A stretch of 29,899 bases of DNA from assembly GCA_002269645.1 (NCBI GenBank), contig NIVC01004236.1, forward strand, positions 1-29,899, read 5' to 3'. This document shows positions 586-28,625 of the stretch, piece after piece (the stretch's first letter is position 1; every line of letters begins with the position of its first letter). The notes under the pieces were generated by a model. It saw only the letters and a program-made list of their open reading frames with translations, did no database searches and was not told the origin of the DNA. Made by a program: the position numbers and the translations under genes. Source of the DNA: Macrostomum lignano. Lineage: Eukaryota.

Positions 586-605
586 CTGAAATTGGGATGC
601 GGTGT

Positions 606-1041: not shown

Positions 1042-1055
1042 AAGCAGCCACCAAC

Positions 1056-2265: not shown

Positions 2266-2357
2266 GGAGGATACACACAGTCTGACAGGGCAATGGCAGC
2301 AAGGATTGAATAGAAGCCGGGAGTTTCCTAATAAAATGCAAAGCCAGCAAAGTGAAC

Positions 2358-2502: not shown

Positions 2503-2674
2503 CTGGTTGATGGAGGAATAAGCAGTAATATCTTGGTTCATTTTGTTGAGCCGAAATCGAATTTTTATCTTGTTCGAGCAAGACTCTGCTAATTTGTCCC
2601 TAAGTACGAATTGTGCGCTAATAAAATTTTCAGCTTTCAGACAATTATAAAGCACAATAATAAAACTATAATTG

Positions 2675-4855: not shown

Positions 4856-4932
4856 GTAAGTATTTATAATAATTAGTAAATCCTCTTCTAAGAGTTGATC
4901 ACAGGATTTTTCTGTTTCTTCTGTTTCTTCAG

Positions 4933-5074
4933 AGGGTCTGCCTTACTGTAACAACATTCTTCGAGAGCGGTACTCCACCGCGTACGCCAAATGGAATCCG
5001 ATTCCATGGTACACTAAAGTTGAAACAGACATTGCCGAATTCTACTGCCAACAGCAGCTGCTCAATTTGAATGG
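4933..5074 (+). CDS. NLR-like gene exon 2 (pre-NACHT segment)
   Basis: TTCTTCAG acceptor, GG/GTAAGT donor, phases 1 to 2 consistent with neighbours. QGLPYCNNILRERYSTAYAKWNPIPWYTKVETDIAEFYCQQQLL shows the LxxxY..P(I/L)PW pattern common before invertebrate NACHT domains. Confidence 0.85.
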
Positions 5075-5151
5075 GTAAGTAGCAGGAAAACAGATCAGAT
5101 CATTAAGCCAGACATAATTTTCAACTTTGATTTCTCAATTTAAAATTGCAG

Positions 5152-7690
5152 AAAGTCAGTCAACGCCTTCCAAGTTTTTGATTATAAGGAAGGCGAAAAA
5201 GACCCGCATACAGTAGTCATTGAGGGTGACCCCGGAACAGGGAAGAGTACGCTGGCTAAGTATATGGCCTACAAATGGTCTTTGGACGAAAACGTATTCG
5301 GACGGCCTTTCCAACTGCTAATCTTGCTTGATCTTAAAGTGACAGCGCCCACAGTGAAAGTGATGATGATGGAACAGCTTTTCGGAGGCGACTGCAAGCT
5401 GGCCGAACGCGAAATTTGGGAGGTGATGAACATGCACCAGGCGAGCACACTGCTCATCATAGATGGCTACGAAGACAATCTAAATGATGAGATGAAGAGT
5501 TTGCTATTTGAGAACATCATGCCGGAACTGCACATTCTGGTATTTAGTCAGACTAACTTTACAGTCAGACTGATGCACCGCTACCAGCGAAAGGTAATTC
5601 TGACCGGATTCGCCAAATCCCAGGCAGAGGAGTACGTTCAGAAGTACGTCAAACTAGCTAAGAAGCCGTGGGAACACTTTTCCTCGTTTCTAAACAAGCT
5701 AGTAGTGGCAAAAAAATCAACTGAGCTTCAAAAGCTGCTGGATGCAGCGAAAAAGTCGCAGGAGCCGCAGAGGCGACGCGGGTCGTCAGAATCGGCGACA
5801 TCTGTGACCTCGGCAAAGCCCAGAGACGAGCGACCTTTGGAGAGGGAAAACACGGACAAAGTCAGCACAAAACTAAGCCGCAGCTCTAGCAAGGGTCAAG
5901 GAAACGATCAGCAGCAACAACAGGATTCAAACGGTGAAAATTCAAATCAAAGCAAAATAGCGTCCCTGCGACATTACTCACAGGTGCCTTTGTACTGTTC
6001 GTTCTTCTGCCTGCTGACCGACATGCGCATGAGTATCGATCTGAACTCTCCGACAACAATTGTGGAACAGTTTGTCTCCTGCATCAAGTTGAAGCTGATC
6101 GAACGCGAAAAGGAGAGTCGCTTCGAAGCGAATCGCGCCTACGCAATGCTGTCCGAACGCGCTATGGACACCATAAAGAAAGGCAGCGCAACTTTCATTT
6201 TGGCCAAGGAGGACCACATGATGACTAAGTTCGGCCTGATTCAACTGGCTACAAACCTCACCGCAGAGGATAACCAGCGCTACATGTTTGGCAATCGTCT
6301 TATTCAAGAGTATCTCGCCGCGAAAAATCTAGACACTAGTGGAACAGATGAAGCTAGCCGCTTCTTCCAGAACATGAGTATGACTCCGATCTCCTACAAT
6401 GTTGTTGTGTTCTACTGCAGCATCCGCAAGTCGGACAACGACACGCCGGCCACCCGGGAACTGTTTGCAAAGATACTGCAGTATAACAAACGGCGAGGCA
6501 AAGCGAGTCGCATGAAAATGCCAGCGGCTACGTCGCCAGAAGACAGTCAACTGGTCGAGGGCAAGATCATGGACTACCAGCTCAGTCTGGAATGCGTGGC
6601 GGTCATGGACATGGCCCGCAGAGATCTTGGCAAGAAAATTGTTGAATCGCTGCCAGAGCGATTCACCGTGAAGCACGAGGGCATCATTCCGAGATTGTCG
6701 CTTACAGGCCTGTCCAAGATGATCAAGTTTAACCACACGACCATCCAAGAGGTGGACTTGCGCCTAGATCTGCTAGCCAAAGAGACGCTTGAGGCATACA
6801 AAAGTCTGGCTACCGCAATGAAAACGAACGTTCACATCAAGACGCTCCGCATCTACTGGACAGAGAAGGATCTAATGGCAGACTTCCTTCAAACCGTGTG
6901 CTGTCCGGAGCCAGAGGACCCCGCCAATTCTACAGGCCAGATGGAAATCAGGCGTAAGAAGCCCGATCAGACCGGCTTTCATCTGAAGAATCTTGAGTGC
7001 ATCGACGAGTCAGGAAAGAAGCTGGACCAGTTGTCGCCAAAAATGCTAAACAACATGCGCGAAGCCTGCTCGAACATGACTAAACTAGAAACGTTCGCAT
7101 TTCAAAATTGTCACCACATGTCGCTGGTTGGAAGCATAATAAAAAATTTGCCAACTAAATTTGCGGACAACCTGCGCATTCTAGACTTTTCTGGCTGCCA
7201 GATGAGCATAGTGGCATCGCAGGATCTCAACGGAAAGCTGATGGAGAGCAAGAGTCTAGAAGGCCTGATCTTGGCTAACCTCAAGATTGATGCGATGGCC
7301 TTTAACACTTTCATCGCCGCATTCTCTAGCAATCGGACCATTGTCCTGCTGGATTTGAGCGGAATCCGCCTGGACAATGTCTGCTTCTTCTCTCTATCCG
7401 AAGCGCTGAAAATTAATAACAAGCTTGAGAAGCTATTCTTACGCCAGGTGCCAATGGACACGAGAGCTTGCAAAGAGGTGGCTAGAATTCTAAAGATTAA
7501 TAAGATGCTGAAACTTCTCACGGTCACGCAGGAGGTCGTCAGCGAGGAGGGTCGCCGGGTTCTGGGCGAGGAGAGCCAGACGGAGACGCGCAAGAATCGG
7601 GCGGTCGTGGACGGCATCGGGGTGGAGTATCGGCAGAGACCGACGAACGAGAGGGCCAATACTAAGAGAAACCCGCTGTCAGTCAAGTGA
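5152..7690 (+). CDS. NLR-like gene exon 3: NACHT NTPase, winged helix and LRR region; full spliced protein 1271 aa
   Basis: Walker A VVIEGDPGTGKSTLAKYMAYKW (5225-5251), Walker B LLIIDGYED, ILTGF, P-motif YSQVPLYCSFFC, WHD FGNRLIQEYLAA, LRRs LRILDFSGCQM / LEGLILANLKI / IVLLDLSGIRL / LEKLFLRQVPM. Exon lengths 1135+142+2539=3816 nt, uninterrupted. Confidence 0.93.
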
Positions 7691-9149
7691 GGAAACCATG
7701 GCCGATGATGAAGACGCATCCTAACTATTATTATCAAATAACAGTGAATTTCAATAACTTTTTAAAAGTTGTGAATAGTTTTTGTTTAGCACTGCCCTCC
7801 TTCGTTAATACGGCCCACAAGAACTTTGTAACTGTTTGCACAGAACGAGAAATCCTAGAATTTAAGCGATATCTTACTGAGACAAAGATGATTTTTTCTA
7901 AAGTAAAAACTGTACGTAAAACATACAGTATTGTTTTAAGTTTATTTATTCTCTATAATAACATTAAGCTAAATGATACAATATAATTTTCAATTTTTTA
8001 ACAGACAGCTTTGTAACAGACTAACAGGAAAAGTTCTTGTCAATTTTTCTAGAAAAAATATAAACAAGTGAATAATAGTTTTTACACTTGGTTGGTTTTA
8101 AATGAAAATTTAAGACAGTGGGTACTTTAAACAAGATGATGATGAAGCGGCCCCAGTCGCTAAACACAGAATCCCAGCTCCAGTTCCATATAAGACCGAT
8201 CGTCCTTCTCTCTTGCCGTAGAGGGAGAAGATTAATTTGCCTGTCGATAAGAAGCCGAGCGACGAAGTTTGGGGTTGCTATGGGGGAGGGGGGTTAATGA
8301 ATCGAATGGAGGCAAAGTGTCAGACAGTAGTGAGATAGATAGGACCCATTCAATCGCGGCATCGATAGCGCTCACACTTATACTATAAGAACTATATAGA
8401 TTCTATATTCGAAAGTCTTGAGCGCATTGGCAGTTTGATTAAAATGCCCATAGCTATAGAGGTTGAAGCCACCAAACTCGCGCTGTCCCATCTTATCGTT
8501 GGGAGGGGGAGCCATAAATGGGAAAGAAAGAGAGAGAGAGACCAACAGGAGCTAGATCGGATAGAGAGAGAGCGAGTGAGCAATTATAAGAAACTGGGGA
8601 ATGTGAAGTTCCGAATGAGAATAAGGCGGAAATGAATAGGCCAGAGGCAAATGGTGAGGGGTGATATATAGGGATTCTGAGCAGTATAGACTCAAATAGA
8701 ATAGGAATGATAGAGATAGAAGAAAGTAAAATGCGGAGGCACCAAATTCCAGAGCTTCGACCGGTTCGAAGAGTTGATTGGTTGCAAAGAGGCACTGATT
8801 TATATACGAGCGTGTATATAATAATACATAGAAGGGAGAAGACTGCAGGGGCTTGGGATTGAATTTTGTTCGGTTTGCTTTTCAATGGGAGATAATGACA
8901 GTGCATAAGAATGAGGAGGTGGTTGGGAGAGGGCAAGGAGACTCAGAACTTGGACTGACAACTCTTATTCAAGCCTTACATTTTTGGACAACTATAAAAC
9001 TTGATTGTAGCTTAGTGTCTTTTAACTTCTCTTTTATTACTAGGTCGCATTTATATTGCTCAGAATGCAGTTAATTGTGTTTAAGGAACTAGCAATCTGC
9101 GCTCCTTCTGTTGGTGACGCAACAAAGAAAGGAATAACAGTTTTGAGTA

Positions 9150-9445
9150 AACTATATGTAAGTAACTACATGTAAGTTTTTTATGTGCAACCGACAGCTC
9201 AGCCGCAGCTATTTCGCGGCGCATTTGAAGGTTGCGTACGGCTGTTCAGTCCAAGGACTGGGGGTCGCCACACACACAGCCTCAATTACCCCAGCTAATG
9301 CTGGCACCATTTTACAGCTGGGTGAACTGAAGCAATGCAGAGTTAAGTGTCTTGTTTAAGGACAAATTGTTTCAGTGGGATCGGAAATCGAACCCCTGAC
9401 CTTCAAATTGTGAGTCCGACGCTCTAACCACTAGGCTACAACAGC
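9150..9445 (-). mobile_element. tRNA-derived CORE-type SINE, copy 2 (most complete)
   Basis: A box TAGCCTAGTGG (~9438-9428), B box GGTTCGATTTCC (~9394-9383), CORE-like body, short ACTTACAT/GTAGTT repeat tail near 9150-9180. Confidence 0.87.
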
Positions 9446-9769
9446 CGTAGTACAGTCAAGTCAGTATTGCTAATCTCTTCAGGAAAATGATGTTTAAAGG
9501 AAAGCAGCATCAGTCTTGAGAAACAGCTATCTAGCTGAAGATATGAGATTCCCTATGAGTTTTTTTGGCTCAAAACATCTGAGTAACCACCAAGAGCCAC
9601 AGAATTTCAGCAATTCCCCCCAATGAGCCTTGACATCTCAGCATTTCCCACACGAACCTTGGCATGTCCCAATTACCACACTGTCATTTTAAAATGTTTT
9701 CTCTGTGTTTTTGGCATGATTTTCTACACACTTTAGTTCCTTATCTGAACCTTTCTGAATTTAGGGCCA

Positions 9770-9945
9770 CACTTTAGGGCAATGAGAATCACACTTTAGG
9801 GCAATGGGAATACACCAATCACAGAATTTCAAGTGAGAATCACACTTTATAATCACACTTTAGGGCAATGAGAATCACACTTTAGGGCAATGAGAATCAC
9901 ACTTTAGGGCAATGAGAATCATACTTTAGGGCAATGAGAATTACT
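9770..9945. repeat. Short array of 22-bp ATCACACTTTAGGGCAATGAGA, reverse complement of the 14905-18077 satellite
   Basis: About 6 copies, partly interrupted. Confidence 0.92.
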
Positions 9946-10332
9946 TTATACTTAAAAGTTCAAACAAAATGACTCGAAACAGTCAGAAACTCGCAGACTG
10001 GGATAGAGGAAGGTTCTTGTTTTTTGCGTTTTTATTTGTTTACTCAATCCTAGCACGCCAAGTTCTAGCTGTGGGCCTCCTTGACACGAGGAGAAAGGGG
10101 AAGAAAAGGAAAAAAGGAAGGACGAGGTGCGTCAGTCGAAGGTACACACAGTCGAGCACGGGCGAATAAAATCGAAAGCTGGTGTGATAGGCCTTGAGAC
10201 GCAGCCAACAAATGGCCTTTAATATTTTAGCATTGCGGCAGGAAAATCCGCTGTAATCTGACACCGGCAATACAGTTTACAAACGAGAGCTGGCCAGCCC
10301 ACTAAACCAGCTGTCGGATTTCCTCCGCAAAG

Positions 10333-10716
10333 ATGAGCGACAATGAGGAACGAATCTGCCTCGTACCAAAAGACGACGACGAATGGAAGCAGCAAAAGCC
10401 GACGGTGACACAAGGAGACACGATCGATGCTACCATAGTAGAGGAGGCTTCAACTTCTTCATCGACGGCTGCAGTCACTACGGCACTGTCAGCAACAGCA
10501 TCGGCACCATCGGCAGCCTCAAACAGCAGCAGCAGCAACAACAAGCGAAGGAGAAAGCTAAGAAGAGCCGGTACAGTTATTGGTGGAAGCAAGAGATTTT
10601 CGAGCCATGGTGGCGGCGGGAGCGGCAGCGGCGGAGTGGCTGGAGGCAGACGGGTGCTGGCTAAGAAGGCCAGTCTGGTTGCTATCGCATCGTCCAAGAG
10701 GCACACAAGTAAAAAA
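10333..10716 (+). CDS. Atypical G-alpha gene, predicted exon 1 (128-aa low-complexity/basic N-terminal extension)
   Basis: ORF from ATG 10333 ends at strong donor AAA/GTGAGT (10717) in phase 0, matching the phase-0 acceptor at 11867. The linkage is inferred from phase only. Confidence 0.6.
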
Positions 10717-10754
10717 GTGAGTAGATCGGAGGCCACAAGATGTTGCATCAAGCA

Positions 10755-11020
10755 GAGGGGGGGGGGTTGTAGCCTACTGGTTAGGGGATTCGATTCTTGA
10801 CCCACCCAGAACAACTTGTGTCCTTGAGAAAGACACCTCAACTCTGCATTGCTTCAGTTCACCCAGCAGTAAAATGGGTGACAGCATTACCTGGGGTAAT
10901 TGAGGGCTTGTGTGGCGATGGCAACCCCAGATTTTAGACTCAACAGCCGCAAGCAGCCTTCAGATGCGCCACGCAATAGCCAGTTGTACGAGCTACATCT
11001 GCCTATTAAGGCAGGTGTAG
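10755..11020 (+). mobile_element. tRNA-derived CORE-type SINE, copy 3 (more diverged)
   Basis: TTGTGTCCTTGAGAAAGACAC..CAGTTCACCCAGCAGTAAAATGGGTG..TGGGGTAATTGAGG..CAGCCTTCAGATGCGCC matches the reverse complement of copies 1 and 2. Confidence 0.8.
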
Positions 11021-11866
11021 TAAAAAAGCTGTCAGTGAAGATGCTATGATAGTGGAGATGAGATCTCACTGGAGATCAGATATTAGTAGATAACATGAGA
11101 AAGAAATAGAGTTAAGGTGAAGGTAAAGATTATACTTCCGTGAATATAAGAGCTCAGTGGAGATTCAATATCAATAAAGACGAGATTTCATTAGGGATGA
11201 AGGTTGAGATGTCAGTAGGGATAAGTTCTCAATGTCATTTCATCACTGGTAGGTAGCTGTAGCCGACTGTAACTATAAATAATGATCAAATATGAATACA
11301 AGTCAATAAGATTGCAATCAAACAATTCTTTTTCAAAACTATCAATTGCTCGGCCGTATTAATTCCCCTATAGAACATTGGGGCGCCCAATTATGCTGAA
11401 GAAGAGATAAAGAAATTGACTATGAAAAAAAGGATGGGAAACGCGCATATTTTTATTTGCATATAACAACGCTTGTCCCCTAATTGCGATTGAAATTCAA
11501 TTATCCAGTACTAAATTTTCTATTTTGAGTTATGGCACGCATTATAGCTATATTGGATTAGAAGATAAGCAAATATATATTGGAATAAATTCGGCAAGGG
11601 GTGCTTAGGAAAATGAGTAGTGGTTGGGAGTACCAACTAGTTTTCTCCTCTATTCTCCGATTCCAACAATCTATAGTGCGAAATGCCAAATTCAGTGTGT
11701 TAAGGAAATGATGACGGCTCGAGTTACGAGCCAATTTCTGGAGAGGATTTAAAAAGCGCCAAACAGTCCTTCTGCCGTCTCACTCACAGATACCTGGGTA
11801 CACGCAAGAGACACCCGCTGAGGACTTAGAGATCTCTTATTCAACTCGCATCAAAACTTCTTACAG

Positions 11867-11996
11867 ATATCGGATCATTTTAACAGCATCAACAAGCTGG
11901 CTCAGAAGAGGGCTCTGATGCGTTCGAAGCAAATTGACCAGCTGTTGCTGACTGACCAGGAAGCCAAGCGCAAGGAGATTCACCTGCTGCTGATTG
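11867..11996 (+). CDS. G-alpha exon: alphaN helix and beta1
   Basis: ISDHFNSINKLAQKRALMRSKQIDQLLLTDQEAKRKEIHLLLIG resembles the canonical RSKxIDxxL..(K/R)ExKLLLLG. TTACAG acceptor, G/GTTTGT donor. Confidence 0.85.
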
Positions 11997-12082
11997 GTTT
12001 GTTTTTTTACTTTAGTACAACACGACACACGTTAAAACAGTTTCTTTCTTACCAAATAATTCCAAATATCTCGACGTCTTAA

Positions 12083-12710
12083 ATGTGTCTACCACAGCCT
12101 GAAGTGTGTCTACCACAGCCTGAAGTGTGTCTACCACAGCCTGAAGTGTGTCTACCACAGCCTGAAGTGTGTCTACCACAGCCTGAAGTGTGTCTACCAC
12201 AGCCTGAAGTGTGTCTACCACAGCCTGAAGTGTGTCTACTACCATATCCTGAAGTGTGTCTACCACAGCCTGAAGTGTGTCTACCACAGCCTGAAGTGTG
12301 TCTACCACAGCCTGAAGTGTGTCTACCACAGCCTGAAGTGTGTCTACCACAGCCTGAAGTGTGTCTACCACAGCCTGAAGTGTGTCTACCACAGCCTGAA
12401 GTGTGTCTACCATATCCTGAAGTGTGTCTACCACAGCCTGAAGTGTGTCTACCACAGCCTGAAGTGTGTCTACCACAGCCTGAAGTGTGTCTACCATATC
12501 CTGAAGTGTGTCTACCATATCCTGAAGTGTGCCTACCATATCCTGAAGTGTCTACCACAGCCTGAAGTGTGTCTACCACAGCCTGAAGTGTGTCTACCAC
12601 AGCCTGAAGTGTGTCTACCATATCCTGAAGTGTGTCTACCATATCCTGAAGTGTGCCTGCCTGAAGTGTGAAGTGTGTCTACCACAGCCTAAGTGTGTCA
12701 AGTGTGTCTA
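12083..12710. repeat. 21-bp minisatellite GTGTGTCTACCACAGCCTGAA in G-alpha intron
   Basis: About 28 copies; source of the PQPEVCL and LQAVVDT artefact ORFs. Confidence 0.97.
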
Positions 12711-13026
12711 AAAGTGTTACTCAGTCTAAAGTGCCCTTTTGAGAGTTCGGAACGTGTCTCACGGCATCTGTAGTGCGTCTCTCGACAGGCTAAAATGTGT
12801 ATACAGTCTATAAGTGTGTCTATCAATAAAAGAGTGTCTCACTATTAAGTTTAAGTTTATGCTGAAGTTTAATTTAAGTTTAATTTTATGAAATTAAAAC
12901 GACAGTATTCATTCATATTATCCGTTATATAGCGCTATTCCTTTAGATTTTTTAACTGCCAAGTTTTTTTCAACCAAAACGTATATTAACGTTTAATCCA
13001 GATTTCACTTTTTGACATTAACTTAG

Positions 13027-13211
13027 GCGGCAACGGATGCGGCAAGAGTACGTTAGTGAAACAGTTTCGAATTCACTACGGAGACGCATTCCCGGACGAG
13101 CAACGCAAGGCGCTGATCGGTCAGGTGCTGGAGAATCTAGCAGATGCGGTGCACATTGTGCTGGAGAATATGCGCACTAGGGACATCTGGTTTCACGATC
13201 CCTACATCAAG
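13027..13211 (+). CDS. G-alpha exon: P-loop and helix alphaA
   Basis: GGNGCGKSTLVKQFRIHYGDAFPDEQRKALIGQVLENLADAVHIVLENM resembles GAGESGKSTFIKQMRIIH..F...E....V.QN...AM..M. Phase-1 acceptor, AAG/GTAGGA donor. Confidence 0.92.
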
Positions 13212-13565
13212 GTAGGAAGGTAGCGGTTTTTTATTCTACATCAAAGTTTGATTGCAGCTGTTGTTGGTCAAAGGGACTTTTTCGAAATTCTAGAAATTAT
13301 CTATCAGAGGACTTGGGCCAGAAGGCTTTCGCTCGATTCCAGGCGTAGCTACATCAAATTTGAATCCACATATTGGGATATTTTTGCTCGACCCATGGCA
13401 GACAAAGTCGGGGCTGCAGTGCATCTTTAGTGCGCCCCTCATGTCTCTGTACTTGTGTAGCTTTGGCTTTAGGGAACCGCAAAAATTCAAGGGCTCACTT
13501 TCTCAGTGCCAGGGTTTTGGAGTTGGTTCTCTTGAACAAGCCCCAGGCAAATATTCATACACCAG

Positions 13566-13975
13566 ACCCGAATTCTGTGGCCCCGCATGGAATGCAACTC
13601 ACACGGAGATGTAAGACCATTGTTAATCGCGCACCCAACCAGGACATGGTTGAAGAATTCCAAGCCTACTGTCCGAAATTCAACAGTCAAATATTTCGCC
13701 ACTCCGGCAAACAAGTGGACATTGAGAACAGCATTCACTACGCGCACGTTGATTTTGTGGACGACGATACGCTGGCATCGGCGCCGACTGACACCGACCT
13801 GCCTAGCAGTTGCGGTCACGACAACGCGCACGAACTACTGTTATTCGATGTTAGCTACCGAGAGGCCAGGCGAAACAACTTAGACTTGAACGGACTTGAC
13901 GGACTGGCTTCGGGTGGGGACGGCAACGGAGGCGACACGGCGTCAGCTTCGTTAATAATCTATTATAATACGCAG
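13566..13975 (+). CDS. G-alpha exon within the helical-domain insertion (5' boundary unresolved: 13507 or 13566; a small exon ~13308-13344 probably precedes it)
   Basis: Open frame ..QDMVEEFQAYCPKFNSQIFRHSGKQVDIENSIHYAHVDFVDDD..YNTQ ending at CAG/GTGAGA in phase 0, matching the acceptor at 14388. Confidence 0.55.
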
Positions 13976-14227
13976 GTGAGAAAGACGCGTCTCACCGGAT
14001 GAGTCTATTTGGAGCATCGTATTAAATAGATAAAGAATAAGAAGTCCACGAGGATTATAAAAAACCAGTTATTTTCTTCTTATCATGTTTTCTTCTACAT
14101 GTAAAATGAAGTCATTATACAAGCGCACATTAAGATCTTAGTACATTTTGGTCCTCATAAATGTGAATTAATGTAACTATAAGGTCATTTCAAGCATGTG
14201 AATGCACATTTTTGTCCTTGTTTAGCG

Positions 14228-14355
14228 CGGCCCGGCGCCTCTAAAGGCTGCGTACGGCTGTTCAGTCCAAGGACTGGCACCCATTTTACAGCTGGGTGAA
14301 CTGCAGCAATGCAGAGTAAAGTGTCTTGCTCAAGGACACAAATTTGAACTCAAGG
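14228..14355 (-). mobile_element. CORE-type SINE, copy 4 (truncated, internally deleted)
   Basis: AAGGCTGCGTACGGCTGTTCAGTCCAAGGACTGG is fused directly to CACCCATTTTACAGCTGGGTGAACTG...GTGTCTTGCTCAAGGACACAA. Confidence 0.85.
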
Positions 14356-14387
14356 TCCTTTCTATCCGATATATAAAAACACCGCAG

Positions 14388-14797
14388 GGCCTCGAGGACA
14401 GCCAGTCCGAAGCGGACGACCGAGACCGTGAGCGAGAGACGCACACGGCCAGGACCTACATTAGCAGTCTGGAATTTGGCAAATTCTCCAGACGTCAAAG
14501 ACGCCAACAACTGCAAAACCTGAGCGGAGAGGATGCCGGACTGAACCAGCTGGACGATGGCAGCTCCGACAGCAGCTGCGCCAGGCTGGTTGAGCACCTT
14601 CACCTAGGCGACGCGCACGACACCGACTCCTCGGGAGGTCGGCGCGCCTCGTCAACCCTGGACGGCTTGCCGCCTCACGACGAAATCGTGTTCTGCTTCG
14701 TGCGACACATAAAGAACTGCATTGTGCAGCCGGAGTTCGAATTGTGCCTCGCTGATCACGAGTACTTCAAGCCGGAGATTACCTACGCCGAGATGTA
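14388..14797 (+). CDS. G-alpha exon: end of insertion, helices alphaC-alphaE (not in ORF track)
   Basis: GLEDSQSEADD...PPHDEIVFCFVRHIKNCIVQPEFELCLADHEYFKPEITYAEM. Ends TA/GTGAGT, completing Tyr with the C at 18196; 410 nt = 136 codons + 2. Confidence 0.75.
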
Positions 14798-14904
14798 GTG
14801 AGTTACTTCGTTTGTTTTTAGAGGGTCTGACAGACAGTCTAGCTGTCCTCTTGATTGTTAATCTGTTTTTTTATATTCAATAGTGACTAGTTCAGTAGGG
14901 CAGC

Positions 14905-17900
14905 GATTCTCATTGCCCTAAAGTGTGATTCTCATTGCCCTAAAGTGTGATTCTCATTGCCCTAAAGTGTGATTCTCATTGCCCTAAAGTGTGATTCTCA
15001 TTGCCCTAAAGTGTGATTCTCATTGCCATAAAGTGTGATTCTCATTGCCCTAAAGTGTGATTCTCATTGTCATAAAGTGTGATTCTCATTGCCCTAAAGT
15101 GTGATTCTCATTGCCCTAAAGTGTGATTCTCATTGTCATAAAGTGTGATTCTCATTGCCCTAAAGTGTGATTCTCATTGTCATAAAGTGTGATTCTCATT
15201 GCCCTAAAGTGTGATTCTCATTGCCCTAAAGGGTGATTCTCATTGCCCTAAAGTGTGATTCTCATTGCCCTAAAGTGTGATTCTCATTGCCCTAAAGTGT
15301 GATTCTCATTGCCCTAAAGTGTGATTCTCATTGCCATAAAGTGTGATTCTCATTGCCCTAAAGTGTGATTCTCATTGCCCTAAAGTGTGATTCTCATTGC
15401 CATAAAGTGTGATTCTCATTGCCCTAAAGTGTGATTCTCATTGCCCTAAAGTGTGATTCTCATTGCCCTAAAGTGTGATTCTCATTGTCATAAAGTGTGA
15501 TTCTCATTGCCCTAAAGTGTGATTCTCATTGCCCTAAAGTGTGATTCTCATTGCCATAAAGTGTGATTCTCATTGCCATAAAGTGTGATTCTCATTGCCC
15601 TAAAGTGTGATTCTCATTGCCCTAAAGTGTGATTCTCATTGCCCTAAAGTGTGATTCTCATTGCCCTAAAGTGTCATTCTCATTGCCCTAAAGTGTGATT
15701 CTCATTGCCCTAAAGTGTGATTCTCATTGCCCTAAAGTGTGATTCTCATTGCCCTAAAGTGTGATTCTCATTGCCCTAAAGTGTGATTCTCATTGCCCTA
15801 AAGTGTGATTCTCATTGCCCTAAAGTGTCATTCTCATTGCCCTAAAGTGTCATTCTCATTGCCCTAAAGTGTCATTCTCATTGCCCTAAAGTGTGATTCT
15901 CATTGCCCTAAAGTGTGATTCTCATTGCCCTAAAGTGTGATTCTCATTGCCCTAAAGTGTCATTCTCATTGCCCTAAAGTGTCATTCTCATTGCCCTAAA
16001 GTGTGATTCTCATTGCCCTAAAGTGTGATTCTCATTGCCATAAAGTGTGATTCTCATTGCCCTAAAGTGTGATTCTCATTGCCCTAAAGTGTGATTCTCA
16101 TTGCCCTAAAGTGTCATTCTCATTGCCCTAAAGTGTCATTCTCATTGCCCTAAAGTGTGATTCTCATTGCCCTAAAGTGTGATTCTCATTGCCCTAAAGT
16201 GTCATTCTCATTGCCCTAAAGTGTCATTCTCATTGCCCTAAAGTGTCATTCTCATTGCCCTAAAGTGTCATTCTCATTGCCCTGAAGTGTGATTCTCATT
16301 GCCCTAAAGTGTGATTCTCATTGCCATAAAGTGTGATTCTCATTGCCCTAAAGTGTGATTCTCATTGCCCTAAAGTGTCATTCTCATTGCCCTAAAGTGT
16401 GATTCTCATTGCCCTAAAGTGTGATTCTCATTGCCCTAAAGTGTGATTCTCATTGCCCTAAAGTGTGATTCTCATTGCCATAAAGTGTGATTCTCATTGC
16501 CCTAAAGTGTGATTCTCATTGCCCTAAAGTGTGATTCTCATTGCCCTAAAGTGTGATTCTCATTGCCCTAAAGTGTGATTATCATTGCCCTAAAGGGTGA
16601 TTCTCATTGCCCTAAAGTGTGATTCTCATTGTCATAAAGTGTGATTCTCATTGCCCTAAAGTGTGATTCTCATTGTCATAAAGTGTGATTCTCATTGCCC
16701 TAAAGTGTGATTCTCATTGCCCTAAAGGGTGATTCTCATTGCCCTAAAGTGTCATTCTCATTGCCCTAAAGTGTCATTCTCATTGCCCTAAAGTGTGATT
16801 CTCATTGCCCTAAAGTGTCATTCTCATTGCCCTAAAGTGTGATTCTCATTGCCCTAAAGTGTCATTCTCATTGCCCTAAAGTGTCATTCTCATTGCCCTA
16901 AAGTGTGATTCTCATTGCCCTAAAGTGTGATTCTCATTGCCATAAAGTGTGATTCTCATTGCCCTAAAGTGTGATTCTCATTGCCCTAAAGTGTGATTCT
17001 CATTGCCCTAAAGTGTCATTCTCATTGCCCTAAAGTGTCATTCTCATTGCCCTAAAGTGTCATTCTCATTGCCCTAAAGTGTGATTCTCATTGCCCTAAA
17101 GTGTCATTCTCATTGCCCTAAAGTGTGATTCTCATTGCCCTAAAGTGTCATTCTCATTGCCCTAAAGTGTCATTCTCATTGCCCTGAAGTGTGATTCTCA
17201 TTGCCCTAAAGTGTGATTCTCATTGCCCTAAAGTGTGATTCTCATTGCCATAAAGTGTGATTCTCATTGCCCTAAAGTGTGATTCTCATTGCCATAAAGT
17301 GTGATTCTCATTGCCCTAAAGTGTGATTCTCATTGCCCTAAAGTGTGATTCTCATTGTCATAAAGTGTGATTCTCATTGCCATAAAGTGTGATTCTCATT
17401 GCCCTAAAGTGTGATTCTCATTGCCCTAAAGTGTGATTCTCATTGCCCTAAAGTGTGATTCTCATTGCCCTAAAGTGTGATTATCATTGCCCTAAAGGGT
17501 GATTCTCATTGCCCTAAAGTGTGATTCTCATTGTCATAAAGTGTGATTCTCATTGCCCTAAAGTGTGATTCTCATTGCCCTAAAGGGTGATTCTCATTGC
17601 CCTAAAGTGTGATTCTCATTGTCATAAAGTGTGATTCTCATTGCCCTAAAGTGTGATTCTCATTGCCCTAAAGGGTGATTCTCATTGCCATAAAATGTAA
17701 TTCTCATTGTCATAAAGTGTGATTCTCATTGCCCTAAAGTGTGATTCTCATTGCCCTAAAGTGTGATTCTCATTGTCATAAAGTGTGATTCTCATTGCCC
17801 TAAAGTGTGATTCTCATTGTCATAAAGTGTGATTCTCATTGCCCTAAAGTGTGATTCTCATTGCCCTAAAGGGTGATTCTCATTGCCCTAAAGTGTGATT

Positions 17901-18077
17901 CTCATTGTCATAAAGTGTGATTCTCATTGCCCTAAAGTGTGATTCTCATTGCCCTAAAGGGTGATTCTCATTGCCATAAAATGTAATTCTCATTGTCATA
18001 AAGTGTGATTCTCATTGCCCTAAAGTGTGATTCTCATTGCCCTAAAGTGTGATTCTCATTGCCCTAAAGGGTGATTC
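14905..18077. repeat. 22-bp satellite GATTCTCATTGCCCTAAAGTGT, ~144 copies (3.2 kb) in G-alpha intron
   Basis: Direct reading; highly homogeneous with a few diagnostic variants. Confidence 0.99.
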
Positions 18078-18195
18078 AACATCAGTCTGATTACAGTTTT
18101 CAAGTTAGCGACAATTTTAACTTAAAACACTAAAAACTTACTAAAATGTTTAAGGCTCTGTAAAATAAAGATCACCAATCTAAATAAATCTACAG

Positions 18196-18324
18196 CTTTA
18201 TACAACACGTGGATCGCGTCATTCAAGAGGACTATGTGCCAACGCTGCAAGATATTTTGGCCATTCGCAAGCCGAGCGACGCAGTCAGACAGACCGAATT
18301 TCAAATTGCTGGCACCACTTTTCG
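18196..18324 (+). CDS. G-alpha exon: alphaE-alphaF, switch I
   Basis: YFIQHVDRVIQEDYVPTLQDILAIRKPSDAVRQTEFQIAGTTFR resembles [41 protein letters not shown] donor. Confidence 0.92.
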
Positions 18325-18349
18325 GTGAGCTTAAAGCGGATGCAGAATG

Positions 18350-19130
18350 TTCTGTGTCTACTTTCCTGTCGCTTCTGTGTCCACCTCTTTGTACTCGCTT
18401 TGTCCACCTCCCTGTCGCTGTAGTGTCCATTTACTGGTCGCTGCTGTGTCCACCTCGTTGCATCCGCTGTGTCCACCTTCCTGTCACTGTTGTGTCCACC
18501 TCTTTGCATCCGCTGTGTCCACCTCTCTGTCGCTGTTATGTCCATCTTCCTGTCGCTGTTATGTCCATCTTCCTGTCACTGTTGTGTCCATCTTCCTGTC
18601 ACTGTTGTGTCCATCTTCCTGTCGCTGTGTGTGTCCACCTTTCTGTCGCTGTTATGTCAATCTTCCTGTCGCTGTTATGTCCATCTTCCTGTCACTGTTG
18701 TGTCCATCTTCCTGTCACTGTTGTGTCCATCTTCCTGTCACTGTTGTGTCCATCTTCCTGTCGCTGTGTGTGTCCACCTTTCTGTCGCTGTTATGTCAAT
18801 CTTCCTGTCGCTGTTATGTCCATCTTCCTGTCACTGTTGTGTCCATCTTCCTGTCACTGTTGTGTCCATCTTCCTGTCACTGTTGTGTCCATCTTCCTGT
18901 CACTGTTGTGTTCATCTTCCTGTCGCTGTGTGTTTCTACCTCTCTGTCGCTGTTATGTCCATCTTCCTGTCGCTGTGTGTGTCCAGCTCTCTGTCGCTGT
19001 GTGTGTCCAGCTCTCTGTCGCTGTGTGTGTCCAGCTCTCTGTCGCTGTGTGTGTCCAGCTCTCTGTCGCTGTTGTGTCCATTTCCCGGTCGCTGTTGAGT
19101 CCACCTTTTTGCATCCGCTGTGTCCACCTC
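18350..19130. repeat. CT-rich ~23-bp degenerate minisatellite (CCTGTCACTGTTGTGTCCATCTT-like)
   Basis: Many variant copies; source of Cys/Leu-rich artefact ORFs. Confidence 0.93.
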
Positions 19131-19216
19131 CCAGCCTCCAATGTGTCTGTTTCCCTAAATTCCCTAAATTCAACTCCCTAAAATGTTTTGTGTCCACCTC
19201 CTTGAATCTGAATCAT

Positions 19217-19478
19217 CTGTGTACACCCCTGTCTATCTGTGTACACCCCTGTCTATCTGTGTACACCCCCTATCTGTGTACACCCCCTATCTGTGTACAC
19301 CCCTGTCTATCTGTGTACACCCCCTGTCTATCTGTGTACATCCCTGTCTATCTGTGTACACCCCCTGTCTATCTGTGTACACCCCCTGTCTATCTGTGTA
19401 CACCCCTGTCTATCTGTGTACACCTCCTGTCTATCTGTGTACACCCCTATCTGTGCGCACCCCCTGTCTATCTGTGTC
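19217..19478. repeat. ~20-21-bp repeat TATCTGTGTACACCCCCTGTC
   Basis: About 13 copies, each with a GTGTACAC palindrome. Confidence 0.93.
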
Positions 19479-19576
19479 CGACCTCCTTGGCTTTTTCATC
19501 ACATCTGGATATCATCAGCCAAGTCAATCAATTTATCTGCAATAAAAATCCGCCCAATTTTCATTCAAAACGACAG

Positions 19577-19706
19577 CATGATCGATCTGGCAGGCCAGAG
19601 AAGCCAGCGGCACAAGTGGATTCACTATTTCGAAGACGTCAACGCAGTGCTATTCGTCAGCTCTCTGTCTGGCTTCGGCGAGCTTGTCGAAGAGGAGGAC
19701 AGAACG
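19577..19706 (+). CDS. G-alpha exon: switch II
   Basis: RMIDLAGQRSQRHKWIHYFEDVNAVLFVSSLSGFGELVEEEDRT resembles [34 protein letters not shown]. Confidence 0.95.
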
Positions 19707-19789
19707 GTGAGAAACCACGCACGTCTTTCTAAATCATTAATCATCATAAATCATGTCATAAACAGACAATCCATCCGTACATTCTCCAG

Positions 19790-19945
19790 ACAATTAAAAT
19801 GTCCGACTGTCTATCAACATTCAGCGAGATCATCAGCAACAAGTACTGTGGAAGAAGGATTTCTTTCTGTTCTTAAACAAATTGGACGTGTTCGAGCAGA
19901 AGTTGAAGTCCAAGAGTATTACAGGACTGTTTCCGGACTATCGAG
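19790..19945 (+). CDS. G-alpha exon: alpha3 and NKxD motif (one -1 shift near 19847-19851)
   Basis: KMSDCLSTFSEIISNKY, then after the shift WKKDFFLFLNKLDVFEQKLKSKSITGLFPDYRG, resembling NRM.ESL.LF.SI.NN.WF....ILFLNKKDLFEEK.......FPEYxG. Confidence 0.88.
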
Positions 19946-19961
19946 GTGAGATTTTTCAGAG

Positions 19962-20480
19962 AAATCGCCCCTGGTTATCCAAGCAAATCACCCTGATTAT
20001 CCATCAAAATCGCCCTGATTATCCATCAAAATCGCCCTGATTATCCATCAAAATCGCCCTGATTATCCAAGCAAATCGCCTTGATTAACCAGGAAAATCG
20101 ACCTGATTATCCATCAAAATCGCCCCGATTATCCATCAAAATCGCCCTCATTATCCATCAAAATCGCCCTGATTATCCATCAAAATCGCCCTCATTATCC
20201 ATCAAAATCGCCCTGATTATCCATCAAAATCGCCCTGATTATCCAAGAAAATCGCCCTAATTATCAAGAAAATCGCCCTGGCTATCGAAGAAAATCGCCC
20301 TGATTATCCAAGAAAATCGCCCTGATTTTCCAACGAAATCTCCCACATTATCCAACGAAATCGCCATTTTTTTCTTGAAAATCGCTCCGATTATCCAAGA
20401 AAATTACCCTGATTATTCAAGAAAATCACCCTGATTATCCAAGAAAATTGCCCTGATTATCTGAAAAAATCGCCCCTAAT
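19962..20480. repeat. 22-bp minisatellite AAATCGCCCTGATTATCCATCA and variants
   Basis: About 22 copies filling the last G-alpha intron. Confidence 0.93.
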
Positions 20481-20549
20481 ATAGATAACAACGAACAAAC
20501 AGAATCGAGACATCAAGTTTGATCCTCCTCAATCGTCCTCAATCTCCAG

Positions 20550-20749
20550 GCCACGACGAGGTGAACCAGTGCGCGCAGTACATCAAGGAGAAGTTCACCA
20601 GCCTCATACCGAAGAACATGCCAAAGTCCAAGAGAATCTACACGCACCTCATCACGGCCATAGACATTGACAGCATGAAGCCCCTGTTCAAAGAAGTGCT
20701 GCATCGAATCGCTGAGGCGAACTTGAAGAAGAGCATCACGATTTTTTAG
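20550..20749 (+). CDS. G-alpha terminal exon (alpha4, beta6, alpha5)
   Basis: GHDEVNQCAQYIKEKFTSL..KRIYTHLITAIDIDSMKPLFKEVLHRIAEANLKKSITIF* resembles ..YI..KF..L..K.IY.HFTCATDT.N++.VF..V.D.I...NLK. Confidence 0.93.
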
Positions 20750-20900: not shown

Positions 20901-20906
20901 AATAAA
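20901..20906 (+). terminator. Candidate polyadenylation signal for the G-alpha gene
   Basis: AATAAA about 150 nt after the TAG. Confidence 0.45.
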
Positions 20907-20917: not shown

Positions 20918-21810
20918 TGACACAAACAAACAATCGATTGACACAAACCATTACTCTTAATAACACAAATCATTACTCTACTGACACAAATCAATACTTT
21001 ACTGACATAAATCATTACTTTACTGACACAAATCATTACTTTACTGACACAAATCATTACTTTACTGACATAAATCATTACTTTACTGACATAAATCATT
21101 ACTTTACTGACAAAAATCAATACTTTACTGACAAAAATCATTACTTTACTGACACAAATCATTACTTTACTGACACAAATCAATACTTTACTGACATAAA
21201 TCATTACTTTACTGACAAAAATCAATACTTTACTGACACAAATCATTACTTTACTGACACAAATCAATACTTTACTGACATAAATCATTACTTTACTGAC
21301 ACAAATCATTACTTTACTGACACAAATCAATACTTTACTGACATAAATCATTACTTTACTGACAAAAATCATTACTTTACTGACACAAATCATTACTTTA
21401 CTGACACAAATCAATACTTTACTGACATAAATCATTACTTTACTGACACAAATCATTACTTTACTGACACAAATCATTACTTTACTGACACAAATCATTA
21501 CTTTACTAACACAAATCATAAACCTACTGACACAAATCATTAATTTACTGACACAAATCATTACTTTACTGACACAAATCATTACTTTACTAACACAAAT
21601 CATAAACCTACTGACACAAATCATTAATTTACTGACACAATTCATAAACCTACTGACACAAATCATTAATTTACTGACACAATTCATAAACCTACTGACA
21701 CAAACCATTACTCTACTGACACAAATCATTACTCTACTGACACAAATCATTACTTTACTGACATAAATCATTAATGTACTGACACAAGTTATTAATCTAC
21801 TGACACAAAT
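20918..21810. repeat. 21-bp AT-rich minisatellite ACACAAATCATTACTTTACTG
   Basis: About 40 copies; source of the VSKVMIC and TDTNHYF artefact ORFs. Confidence 0.97.
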
Positions 21811-22339: not shown

Positions 22340-22632
22340 GGATCTGGGAGGCTGGTGGGCCATCATCTGAGGATCTGGGAGGCTGGCCCAGCAACTGGAG
22401 GGATCTGAGAATGGAGGCCCAGCAACTGGAGGGATCTGAGAATGGAGGCCCAGCAACTGGAGGGATCTGAGAATGGAGGCCCAGCAACTGGGGATCTGAG
22501 AATGGGGGCCTAGCAACTGGGGATCTGAGAATGGGGGCCTAGCAACTGGGGATCTGAGAATGGGGGCCCAGCAACTGGGGACCTGAGAATGGAGGCCCAG
22601 CAATTGGGGATCTGAGAATGGAGGCCCAGCAA
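22340..22632. repeat. ~30-bp minisatellite GGATCTGAGAATGG(A/G)GGCCCAGCAACTG(G) in BRCA2 intron
   Basis: About 10 copies; variant of the GGATCTG...CAGCAACT family. Confidence 0.93.
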
Positions 22633-22664
22633 CACAGAATCTGTAACCCGCAGTTCACACAAAC

Positions 22665-24358: not shown

Positions 24359-24388
24359 CTGCGGGATGGAGAGATTTTTATCAACATG

Positions 24389-25885
24389 AGATCTGGTAAG
24401 CTTGCCTAGCAACTGAGGATCTGGTAAGCTTGCCTAGCAACTGAGGATCTGGTAAGCTTGCCTAGAAACTGAGGATCTGGTAAGCTTGCCTAGCAACTGA
24501 GGATCTGGTAAGCTTGCCTAGCAACTGAGGATCTGGTAAGCTTGCCTAGCAACTGAGGATCTGGTAAGCTTGCCTAGCAATTGAGGATCTGGTAAGCTTG
24601 CCTAGCAACTGAGGATCTGGTAAGCTTGCCTAGCAACTGAGGATCTGGTAAGCTTGCCTAGCAATTGAGGATCTGGTAAGCTTGCCTAGCAACTGAGGAT
24701 CTGGTAAGCTTGCCTAGCAACTGAGGATCTGGTAAGCTTGCCTAGCAACTGAGGATCTGGTAAGCTTGCCTAGCAACTGAGGATCTGGTAAGCCTGCCTA
24801 GCAACTGAGGATCTGGTAAGCTTGCCTAGCAACTGAGGATCTGGTAAGCTTGCCTAGCAACTGAGGATCTGGTAAGCTTGCCTAGCAACTGGGGATCTGG
24901 TAAGCTTGTCTAGCAACTTAGGATGTGGTAAGCTTGCCTAGCAACTGAGGATCTGGTAAGCTTGTCTAGCAACTGAGTATCTGGTAAGCTTGCCTAGCAA
25001 CTGAGGATCTGGTAAGCTTGCCTAGCAACTGAGGATCTGGTAAGCTTGCCTAGCAACTGAGGATCTGGGAGGCTGGGTCAGCAACTTAGGATCTGGTAAG
25101 CTTGCCTAGCAACTGAGGATCTGGTAAGCTTGCCTAGCAACTGAGGATCTGGTAAGCTTGCCTAGCAACTGAGGATCTGGTAAGCTTGCCTAGCAATTGA
25201 GGATCTGGTAAGCTTGCCTAGCAACTGAGGATCTGGTAAGCTTGCCTAGCAACTGAGGATCTGGTAAGCTTGCCTAGCAACTGAGGATCTGGTAAGCTTG
25301 CCTAGCAATTGAGGATCTGGTAAGCTTGCCTAGCAACTGAGGATCTGGTAAGCTTGCCTAGCAACTGAGGATCTGGTAAGCTTGCCTAGCAATTGAGGAT
25401 CTGGTAAGCTTGCCTAGCAACTGAGGATCTGGTAAGCTTGCCTAGCAACTGAGGATCTGGTAAGCTTGCCTAGCAACTGAGGATCTGGTAAGCCTGCCTA
25501 GCAACTGAGGATCTGGTAAGCTTGCCTAGCAACTGAGGATCTGGTAAGCTTGCCTAGCAACTGAGGATCTGGTAAGCTTGCCTAGCAACTGGGGATCTGG
25601 TAAGCTTGTCTAGCAACTTAGGATGTGGTAAGCTTGCCTAGCAACTGAGGATCTGGTAAGCTTGTCTAGCAACTGAGTATCTGGTAAGCTTGCCTAGCAA
25701 CTGAGGATCTGGTAAGCTTGCCTAGCAACTGAGGATCTGGTAAGCTTGCCTAGCAACTGAGGATCTGGGAGGCTGGGTCAGCAACTTAGGATCTGGTAAG
25801 CTTGCCTAGCAACTGAGGATCTGGTAAGCTTGCCTAGCAACTGAGGATCTGGTAAGCTTGCCTAGCAACTGAGGATCTGGGAGGC
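24389..25885. repeat. 28-bp minisatellite GAGGATCTGGTAAGCTTGCCTAGCAACT, ~53 copies, BRCA2 intron
   Basis: Direct reading; contains a 700-bp internal duplication. Confidence 0.98.
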
Positions 25886-26068
25886 TTAGCGGTCGCCCAG
25901 CAAATGAGGGTCCAGAAGGCTTCAATACTGAACTTGTAAACTACATTGTATGCATTAGAGACGTATTTTGCTAGAGGATTTGTTGATTTCTAGAAGGGTA
26001 AATGTAAAACCCTAAAGATGCTACTAACTTGACAAAGTAGTTCAGTAAGTTCGGTAAATCCCACTCAC

Positions 26069-27799: not shown

Positions 27800-28625
27800 A
27801 GGATCTGGGAGGCTGTTGGCCCAGCAACCGAGGATCTGGGAGCTGGTGGCCCAGCAACTGGGGATCTGGGAGGCTGGCCCAGCAACTGGGGATCTGGGAG
27901 GCTGGTGGCCCAGCAACTGGGGATCTGGGAGGCTGGCCCAGCAACTGGGGATCTGGGAGGCTGGTGGCCCAGCAACCGAGGATCTGGGAGGCTGGTGGCC
28001 CAGCAACTGGGGATCTGGGGGGCTGGTGGCCCAGCAACTGGTGATCTGGGAGGCTGGCCCAGCAACCGAGGATCTGGGAGGCTGGTGGCCCAGCAACTGG
28101 GGATCTGGAGACTGGCCCAGCAACTGAGGATCTGGGAGGCTGGTGGCCCAGCAACCGAGGATCTGGGAGGCTGGTGCCCAGCAACTGGGGATCTGGGAGG
28201 CTGGCCAGCAGACTGGGATCTGGGAGGCTGGTGGCCCAGCAACCGAGGATCTGGAGGCTGGTGGCCCAGCAACTGGGGATCTGGGGGCTGGTGGCCAGCA
28301 ACTGGTGATCTGGGAGGCTGGCCCAGCAACCGAGGATCTGGGAGGCTGGTGGCCCAGCAACTGGGGATCTGGGGGCTGGCCCAGCAACTGAGGATCTGGG
28401 AGGCTGGGAGGCTGGTGGCCAGCAACTGGGGATCTGGGAGGCTGGTGGCCCAGCAACTGAGGATCTGGGAGGCTGGCGGCTTAGCAACGACGAGGATCTG
28501 GAAGGCTGATGGCCCAGCAACTGGGGATCTGGGAGGCTGGCGGCTTAGCAACCGAGGATCTGGGAGGCTGGTAGCCCAGCAACTGGGGATCTGGGAGGCT
28601 GGCGGCTTAGCAACCGAGGATCTGG
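27800..28625. repeat. GGATCTGGGAGGCTGG(TGG)CCCAGCAACT minisatellite downstream of the CEP85-like stop codon
   Basis: About 28 copies of 27-30 bp; source of six artefact ORFs. Confidence 0.96.

Follow-up and report, generated by a model that had tools for sequence, protein, structure and literature searches.

A probable gene for a G-alpha-a class G protein alpha subunit with atypical nucleotide-binding motifs in the flatworm Macrostomum lignano

The five-class textbook scheme of G protein alpha subunits omits the G-alpha-a class, on whose biochemistry, partners and receptors we know of no report, and which we take to be the class of Knol et al. (1995). Reportedly, these authors described a Lymnaea G-alpha "containing atypical guanine nucleotide-binding domains" (J Biol Chem 270:18804). 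A group of alpha subunits in de Mendoza et al. (2014; PMC3971589) is probably the same class. Here we describe a locus in a 29.9-kb stretch of minisatellite-rich animal genomic DNA from the flatworm Macrostomum lignano (contig NIVC01004236.1, 29,899 nucleotides, hereinafter the window). This locus is, in our opinion, quite probably the M. lignano gene for an alpha subunit of the G-alpha-a class, likely still acting as a guanine-nucleotide switch, and it is best filed as an unannotated flatworm member of a known, functionally unexplored class.

The residues discussed below are numbered as in Gi1, several mutants of which bear on this locus. Thomas et al. in 2004 (PNAS 101:7560) are said to have found that G202A speeds up hydrolysis in Gi1. 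The G42V mutant is GTPase-deficient, since a residue 42 with a side chain can interfere with the placement of Gln204; G42R hydrolyses GTP and cannot reach the active/transition state, the convergence of the switches being hindered; in K180P, hydrolysis is uncoupled from the conformational change and proceeds without full activation (PMC3285607). As to the regulators of G-alpha, G183S blocks RGS binding (PMC12505447), and the switch I of G12/13 is predicted to clash with the canonical RGS box, Lys179 and Lys182 running into the box backbone (PMC7572916).

Six-frame translation of the window and tblastn with human GNAI1 revealed a G-alpha gene at 10333-20749 of the plus strand. It consists of eight coding exons, all with GT-AG borders and consistent phase, and encodes 574 aa if exon 7 is taken from a second copy of the locus. 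The same region is present in two contigs of the assembly GCA_002269645.1, L001 (the end of NIVC01003379.1; window positions ~1-15550) and L002 (window positions ~1037-19990), with ~99% identity to the window in the part harboring an NLR-like gene and 95-98% beyond it. Neither contig is identical to the window, and both are usable as independent copies, be they alleles, duplicates or products of a different assembly. The features of the gene are as follows (slashes mark exon borders).

10333..10716, plus strand: exon 1 (predicted), ATG and 128 codons, Ser/Gly-rich N-terminal extension with polybasic KRRRKLRR
11867..11996, plus strand: exon 2, alpha-N helix and beta-1 strand, …KRALMRSKQIDQLLLTDQEAKRKEIHLLLI and the first base of Gly40
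13027..13211, plus strand: exon 3, 185 nt, P-loop GGNGCGKST, alpha-1 and alpha-A
14388..14797, plus strand: exon 4, rest of the helical domain with an acidic low-complexity insert of ~85 aa, ending in …CIVQPEFELCLADHEYFKPEITYAEM/Y
18196..18324, plus strand: exon 5, 129 nt, linker 2 and switch I, …DILAIRKPSDAVRQTEF…
19577..19706, plus strand: exon 6, 130 nt, beta-3, switch II MIDLAGQRSQRHKWIHYFE… and switch III
19790..19945, plus strand: exon 7, alpha-3 and NKLD, 156 nt in the window
20550..20749, plus strand: exon 8, G5 box ITAIDI, alpha-5 helix, the end …ANLKKSITIF and the stop TAG at 20747-20749
20901..20906, plus strand: candidate polyadenylation signal AATAAA, 152 nt past the stop, a pattern match only

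The spliced product matched the Pfam G-alpha family (PF00503) with 267 bits (E = 3e-79, cut-off 48.8) over profile positions 3-331 of 333, and PDB G-alpha chains with E = 3e-50. A perfect phase-0 donor (AAA/GTGAGT) terminates the open reading frame (ORF) of exon 1, and this exon, together with 30 nt of flank on each side, is 100% identical in L001 and L002. The N-terminus predicted from it, MSDNEE, is devoid of Gly2 and Cys3 of the Met-Gly-Cys lipidation motif. Exon 2, to which residues 10-40 of GNAI1 were aligned by tblastn, is bordered by the acceptor cttcttacag/ and the donor G/GTTTGT in phase 1.

As for exon 4 (410 nt, without a single substitution against L002), its start is uncertain, as there are alternative in-phase acceptors at 14355 and 14292. 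We preferred 14388-14797 because of the open frame with a perfect GTGAGT donor, the right phases (phase 2 at the donor), and the motifs "QPEF" and "TYA..YF", which are common to the flatworm relatives of the protein. The start at 14292 possesses a strong acceptor and weak similarity to the relatives, but lies inside an interspersed repeat and was not preferred. A missing helical-domain exon, suspected at 13258-13740 from similarity seen by eye in three frames, was discarded, as no translation of this region matched PDB G-alpha; the scoring of candidate exon combinations with a small hidden Markov model gave no discrimination. Finally, we rejected the idea that the G-alpha is fused to the NLR-like gene lying upstream of it, since both the ORF of the latter and its annotated protein stop at 7688-7690, and the G-alpha gene has an ATG exon of its own with a consensus donor.

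The product carries the complete set of G-protein boxes, i.e., GGNGCGKS (G1), R178, DLAGQ (G3), NKLD (G4), and ITAI (G5), which are located, all on the plus strand, as listed here.

P-loop GGNGCGKS: Gly40 codon split between G at 11996 and GC at 13027-13028; G41 13029-31, N42 13032-34, G43 13035-37, C44 13038-40, then G45 and K46; S47 13047-49
Switch I IRKPSDAV: R178 18266-18268; K179, P180, S181, D182 and A183 within 18269-18283
Switch II DLAGQ: D200 19584-86, L201, A202 19590-92, G203, Q204 19596-98
NKLD box: 19876-19887
G5 box ITAI: 20651-20662

The original prediction, according to which a G-alpha with retained catalytic Arg and Gln has an altered GTPase and is insensitive to RGS proteins, was based on residues of these boxes, and all the residues it named were found in the positions it assigned to them. 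It mentioned neither the replacement of K180 by Pro nor the 1-nt deletion that exon 7 of the window shows against L002, and the span it considered (13027-19598) is narrower than the gene. Since the P-loop exons, exon 3 among them, are identical in L001 and L002, and the exons of switch I and switch II (exons 5 and 6) are identical in L002, the codons in question are the same in other M. lignano contigs wherever these overlap with the window, and sequencing error is excluded for the P-loop, switch I and switch II residues.

A word-indexed protein search returned six matches only, with at most 33% identity, as if the gene were an orphan; this assumption was overturned by an exhaustive phmmer search, in which exon 3, compared with 1.84 billion representative proteins, retrieved 58 relatives with up to 57% identity. 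One group of them consists of proteins of 590-650 aa from trematodes (Clonorchis, Fasciola, Calicophoron) and cestodes (Taenia, Echinococcus, Hymenolepis, Sparganum), together with shorter or partial proteins of Paragonimus, the schistosome Heterobilharzia, and the monogenean Cichlidogyrus. Another group comprises proteins of 360-420 aa from molluscs and a brachiopod; a Priapulus protein was also among the relatives of exon 3. The family profile, built from both groups and the M. lignano gene, has a sharp boundary: the members score 322-633 bits, and canonical G-alpha (Gq/11/14) 299 bits at most. Among molluscs, the family includes the proteins of Lymnaea stagnalis and Biomphalaria glabrata named "G protein alpha-a subunit," Lottia LOTGIDRAFT_188884, and proteins of Aplysia, Haliotis, many bivalves, Argonauta, and a chiton; outside molluscs, it includes those of Lingula, Terebratalia (deposited as "alpha 12a"), Lineus, Owenia, Paralvinella, Branchiostoma, two hemichordates, corals, and an anemone.

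Pairwise and tree-based comparisons gave a similar picture. In blastp, the spliced protein matched a bivalve member of the class with 231 bits, GNAI1 in two high-scoring segment pairs (143 and 50 bits), and the long flatworm proteins also in two (157-159 and 85-98 bits); the bivalve member itself is equidistant from canonical classes in PDB (Gi1, 251 bits; Gq, 243 bits; G13 chimera, 241 bits). In a neighbour-joining tree (347 columns, 60 bootstraps), the class including the M. lignano gene, the group of this gene with the proteins of parasitic flatworms, and the parasite proteins alone were each recovered in 60/60 replicates. The exon structure is in line with this placement. The exons of the Lottia G-alpha-a gene, of ~186/276/129/130/157 nt, correspond to M. 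lignano exons of 185/410/129/130/157 nt (the last one as in L002) with the same border residues, so that exon 3 is the counterpart of Lottia exon 2 and exon 5 has the length and phase of Lottia exon 4; the donor border of exon 2 is that of Lottia exon 1, and the M. lignano gene has one extra 5' exon. These borders presumably match those of human GNAI and GNAQ as well, the lengths of 185, 129 and 130 nt agreeing with those of the human exons; exon 3 is as long as the GNAI exon pair (43 and 142 nt) taken together and as the single 185-nt GNAQ exon.

The implicit frame of the original prediction was different: a fast-evolving paralogue, specific to the lineage, of one of the canonical classes (Gi/o, Gq or G12/13), rewired only in Macrostomum. 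It could be supported by the best PDB matches, which are Go and Gi (175 bits), by the G12/13-like Lys179 and G5-box TAI, and by Pro180, found in Gq and G13. However, the protein is only 29-34% identical to every canonical class, compared to 38-67% among these classes themselves, falls into the G-alpha-a clade in all bootstraps, and shares its atypical motifs with proteins from corals to amphioxus. Membership in Gi/o was judged by at least ~50% identity, an MGC N-terminus and the canonical GAGESGKS, RVKTTG, and DVGGQ; the protein has 34% identity to GNAI1, differs in the P-loop, switch I and switch II motifs, and lies outside the Gi clade. Membership in G12/13, considered because of the "G alpha 12a" label, Lys179, and TAI, was rejected, as the class grouped with G12/13 in 0/60 bootstraps and the exon structure differs: the borders are common to Lottia G-alpha-a, whereas GNA12 is reported to have no exon borders in common with other classes (PMC5896119). 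On the whole, the paralogue explanation seems to us very improbable.

Assignment to G-alpha-a also makes it possible to sort the unusual residues by the depth of their conservation. Throughout the class, according to our motif table, Glu43 is replaced by Gly, Ser or Cys, the N-terminal Met-Gly is lacking, and Ala, Cys, Ser, Asn or Lys stands in place of Arg242. Glu43 of the P-loop and Arg242 of switch III are lost together, and their co-replacement suggests a joint loss of the contact between the P-loop and switch III. In bilaterian members, residue 42 is mostly Ala, Pro or Ser (Gly is kept in two brachiopods), Pro takes the place of Lys180 everywhere except in Argonauta, and Ala that of Gly202 (DVAGQ) in most; Thr182 is replaced by Leu, Val, Ile or Phe (Thr is kept in Owenia and Branchiostoma), and residues 176-177 are Tyr-Ile-like. 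Most flatworm members have, in addition, Ser instead of Thr181 (Cys in two cestodes) and Ala instead of Gly183, and their position 42 is unconstrained (Asn, Ile, Thr, Pro, Arg, His). Asn42, Cys44, and Asp182 are found in the M. lignano gene alone, which possesses Gly43, Lys242, Pro180, and Ala202 in accordance with the class; its Lys179 is common to several non-flatworm members and G12/13 and occurs in no other flatworm protein of the table. Thus, most of the deviations are hallmarks of a named class and not a unique event, and the idea of a singular natural rewiring of a Gi-like protein is not supported. The survey of orthologues, proposed along with it, had a mixed outcome: the atypical P-loop and switch design is conserved, while Asn42 is not, the close relatives having Ile, Thr, Pro, Arg or His instead.

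On sequence grounds, this is a G-alpha-a gene with an intact nucleotide-binding and catalytic core. The retained GxxxxGKS, 181 hydroxyl, DxxGQ with Gln204, Arg178, NKxD, and Ala of the G5 box would most likely allow Mg-GTP binding and hydrolysis, i.e., a working switch. The surroundings of the catalytic site follow the design of the class, unlike those of Gi/q/s/12, with no Glu43 or Arg242, a side chain at position 42, Pro180, and Ala202; to this design, flatworms add Ser181 and Ala183, and the M. lignano gene Lys179, Asp182, and Cys44. By analogy, intrinsic GTP hydrolysis and the GTP-driven conformational change could be tuned unlike those of canonical G-alpha, and the docking face of switch I could be incompatible with RGS-box proteins. 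The altered GTPase kinetics and RGS insensitivity that had been predicted are therefore plausible in the light of G42V/R, K180P, G183S, and G12/13. Anyway, the sign and size of the kinetic change are not deducible, because G202A (faster) opposes substitutions of G42 and K180P (slower or uncoupled), and both Glu43 and Arg242 are gone. The protein is also predicted to be devoid of N-myristoylation and palmitoylation and to carry a basic Ser-rich extension and an acidic helical-domain insert; the missing lipidation motif, the extension and the insert may suggest different membrane targeting or partners.

Several points weigh against this interpretation of the locus. No gene is called at it in the annotated assembly GCA_002269645.1, and the protein searches returned no Macrostomum protein. 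Two parts of the gene model, exon 1 and the beginning of exon 4, are predicted, and ITAI, encoded by exon 8, was seen in the window copy only. The neighbour-joining tree could be misled by long branches, although its outcome is in agreement with the common motifs and exon structure. The predicted kinetics and RGS insensitivity are drawn from Gi1 point mutants, that is, from a different background. In addition, the losses in the sister proteins indicate that the lineage may drift away from the GTPase function. Only in parasitic flatworms are S47N (trematodes), K46R, R178Q, D200N/H, and N269T (cestodes), and G203E/L/D/Q found, together with helical-domain inserts of 250-350 aa, and these members look like pseudo-GTPases. 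If the same is true for M. lignano, the protein would be a pseudo-GTPase or scaffold, which binds nucleotide or nothing, does not cycle, and acts via its extension and insert. Besides the state of the neodermatan sisters, the unconstrained position 42 of flatworm members and the nucleotide contacts of the helical domain, D150 and S151, not conserved in our alignment, speak for this possibility. In contrast to the sister proteins, that of M. lignano retains K46, S47, R178, D200, G203, Q204, N269, K270, and D272, as well as the 181 hydroxyl, the Ala of G5, W211, and the normal alpha-5 C-terminus. Such retention of core residues is hard to explain without a nucleotide-dependent function, which makes a pseudo-GTPase quite unlikely in our view.

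A working switch in M. lignano and degenerate proteins in parasites might be stages of a single process. One can tentatively suppose, without regarding it as probable, that flatworm G-alpha-a proteins form a series from a working G-alpha to an "extra-large" pseudo-GTPase. Macrostomum would represent the transitional form, with catalytic residues kept, position 42 freed, switch I of the P-S-x-A type, and a short insert; later, monogeneans, trematodes, and cestodes would have lost Ser47, Lys46, Arg178, Asp200 or Asn269, and the insert would have grown to 250-350 aa. We know of no prior description of such a trajectory, our search of the flatworm literature not having been thorough.

The remaining points that count against a functional gene concern the window copy, whose exon 7, as assembled, bears a frameshift. 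Between 19846 and 19847 it lacks one C (TAC CTG becomes TACTG), and the shifted frame meets a stop codon at 19874-19876. If splicing used the alternative in-frame acceptor at 19825 instead, the first half of alpha-3 would be deleted and replaced. In L002, which is intact through exon 7, the extra C is present (TAC CTG TGG), and the exon has 157 nt, as does the matching exon of Lottia, and an open frame reading TIKMSDCLSTFSEIISNKYLWKKDFFLFLNKLD / …SNKYLWKKDFFLFLNKLD…. Another 1-nt deletion of the window, GGG to GG at 3815, lies in the coding sequence of the NLR-like gene, as compared with L001, L002, and the annotated protein. These lesions, the absence of annotation, and the reported hidden tetraploidy of M. 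lignano (PMC5704211) could mean that the window copy is a decaying duplicate or young pseudogene in a hidden-polyploid genome, with a real frameshift and residues uninformative about any working protein. However, both deletions shorten short runs of the same base (CC to C, GGG to GG) and are the only exonic differences from L002, a pattern that is usual for indels of long-read assemblies but unlike neutral decay. Exon 4 of L001 contains two single-G insertions (window positions 14408 and 14702), absent from the window and L002, which show that single-base indel errors or lesions occur in public contigs too. Because of these insertions, the same-base runs and the lack of exonic substitutions in the G-alpha gene, we consider the exon 7 lesion to be more likely an assembly indel than biology. 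The pseudogene explanation is, accordingly, rather unlikely, and even if true it would concern one copy only, the class-typical exon 7 being intact in L002.

The comparison of the window with L002 revealed 0 substitutions in 1525 exonic nt versus 62 in 5669 aligned non-exonic nt outside tandem repeats (1.1%), a rate at which ~17 exonic substitutions were expected. The zero is supportive of constraint, but is no proof of it: even synonymous differences are absent between the copies, which weakens the argument from selection and tells against our interpretation as well, since mutational or alignment heterogeneity may contribute. The stronger argument for a functional gene is the presence of eight open exons with intact splice sites at 29-34% identity to canonical classes, which is unlike a long-dead pseudogene.

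As to the surroundings of the gene, the minus strand of the window carries a BRCA2-like gene (24225-22813, 22315-21890, and 1513-~1090) with four BRC repeats and the exons of the helical domain and OB1, as recognized by Pfam. Between the latter two exons, the plus strand harbors the NLR-like gene and the G-alpha-a gene, both nested in ~20 kb of BRCA2 intron; small BRCA2 exons in between are possible. The NLR-like gene (3605-7690, plus strand; BOX15_Mlig026612g2) encodes HEPN_DZIP3, CARD, and NACHT domains (the last in an 808-aa ORF) and a C-terminal repeat region, and the deletion at 3815 puts the first ~42 residues of its window copy out of frame.

Minisatellites of 20-23 bp fill most introns of the G-alpha gene (12084-12699, 14905-18077 in intron 4, 18401-19107, 19215-19477, and 19962-20475), and one more minisatellite of this kind occupies 20939-21810. 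A 22-bp array comprises 144 copies in the window and only ~1 kb in L002, so that the array length differs strongly between the copies of the region. Minisatellites with units of 28-31 bp (607-1041, 22385-22633, 24382-25887, and 27801-28625), with the motifs GGATCTGG… and …CAACTG, are located in and around the BRCA2-like gene and create long spurious ORFs on both strands. An interspersed repeat is present at 2730-2890, 9217-9364, 10813-10884 (reverse), and 14230-14344, with 88-93% identity between the copies; the last copy, directly upstream of exon 4, contains a strong, probably unused acceptor at 14291/14292. Intron 3 harbors an ORF of 209 aa (13373-14002, plus strand) without a Pfam match, whose motif RHSGKQVDIENS resembles a repeat of a designed beta-trefoil lectin from PDB; this may be a chance resemblance or a relic of another element.

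Taken together, members and relatives from corals to flatworms make G-alpha-a a sixth, pan-metazoan class of G-alpha. The locus shows that flatworms retain this class and supplies a gene model absent from the public M. lignano annotation. If the series supposed above is real, the Macrostomum protein could act as a non-lipidated switch independent of RGS proteins and possibly also of receptors, and would be a tractable entry to G-alpha-a function in a transgenic model flatworm. It also reveals a gradient from intact to degenerate catalytic sites within one phylum, which raises questions testable in a laboratory flatworm: what kinetics result when Glu43 and Arg242 are missing and Pro180 and Ala202 are present, whether the protein is blind to RGS, and why parasites retain a version probably unable to hydrolyse GTP.

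Among known systems, the closest to the M. lignano protein is the G-alpha-a class itself, which likewise lacks Glu43, Arg242 and the N-terminal Met-Gly and has switch I of the Arg-x-Pro type, D-V/L-A-G-Q in switch II, the G5 box of the "AIDI/AIDV" type, and the C-terminus NL(K/R)(K/R)xxxx. Its P-loop contains Ala, Pro or Ser at position 42, whereas the M. lignano protein adds Asn42, Cys44, Ser181, Asp182, Ala183, the predicted 128-aa extension, and the ~85-aa insert, and matches the Pfam profile with 267 bits compared to 324 for Lymnaea G-alpha-a. The long proteins of parasitic flatworms, automatically named "guanine nucleotide-binding protein alpha-15 subunit" or hypothetical (Clonorchis GAA37642.2, Fasciola THD26375.1, Calicophoron CAL8096126.1, and the proteins of Taenia, Echinococcus, Hymenolepis, Sparganum, and Cichlidogyrus), share with it QPEFQ, TYA(D/E)xYF(I/V)xHVDR(I/V)IQEDY(V/I)PTLQDIL, switch I R/Q-x-P-S-x-A-V, KKDF(F/V)(L/V)FLNK, a helical-domain insert, and a variable P-loop. 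Their insert is Pro-rich and has 250-350 aa, and core residues are lost, while in M. lignano the insert is much shorter and the core is kept.

Other systems resemble the M. lignano protein in particular features. G-alpha-z, with residues other than Gly and Glu at positions 42/43 of the P-loop (GTSNSGKS), has a very slow intrinsic GTPase. It differs in being a Gi-class retrogene with canonical switches I and II, N-terminal lipidation, and sensitivity to RGS (RGSZ), and there is no phylogenetic link between the two. Lys179, a residue other than Thr at 182, Gln207, and the T-A-I of the G5 box are features in common with G-alpha-12/13, which, however, possess the canonical GAGESGKS, DVGGQ, and Arg242 and are not sister to the class in the tree. 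Finally, the Gi1 mutants G42V, G42R, K180P, G202A, and G183S are changed in the same positions as the M. lignano protein; each of them has a single change in Gi1, whereas the M. lignano protein combines changes at these positions, with different residues (Asn42, Ala183), and lacks Glu43 and Arg242 as well.

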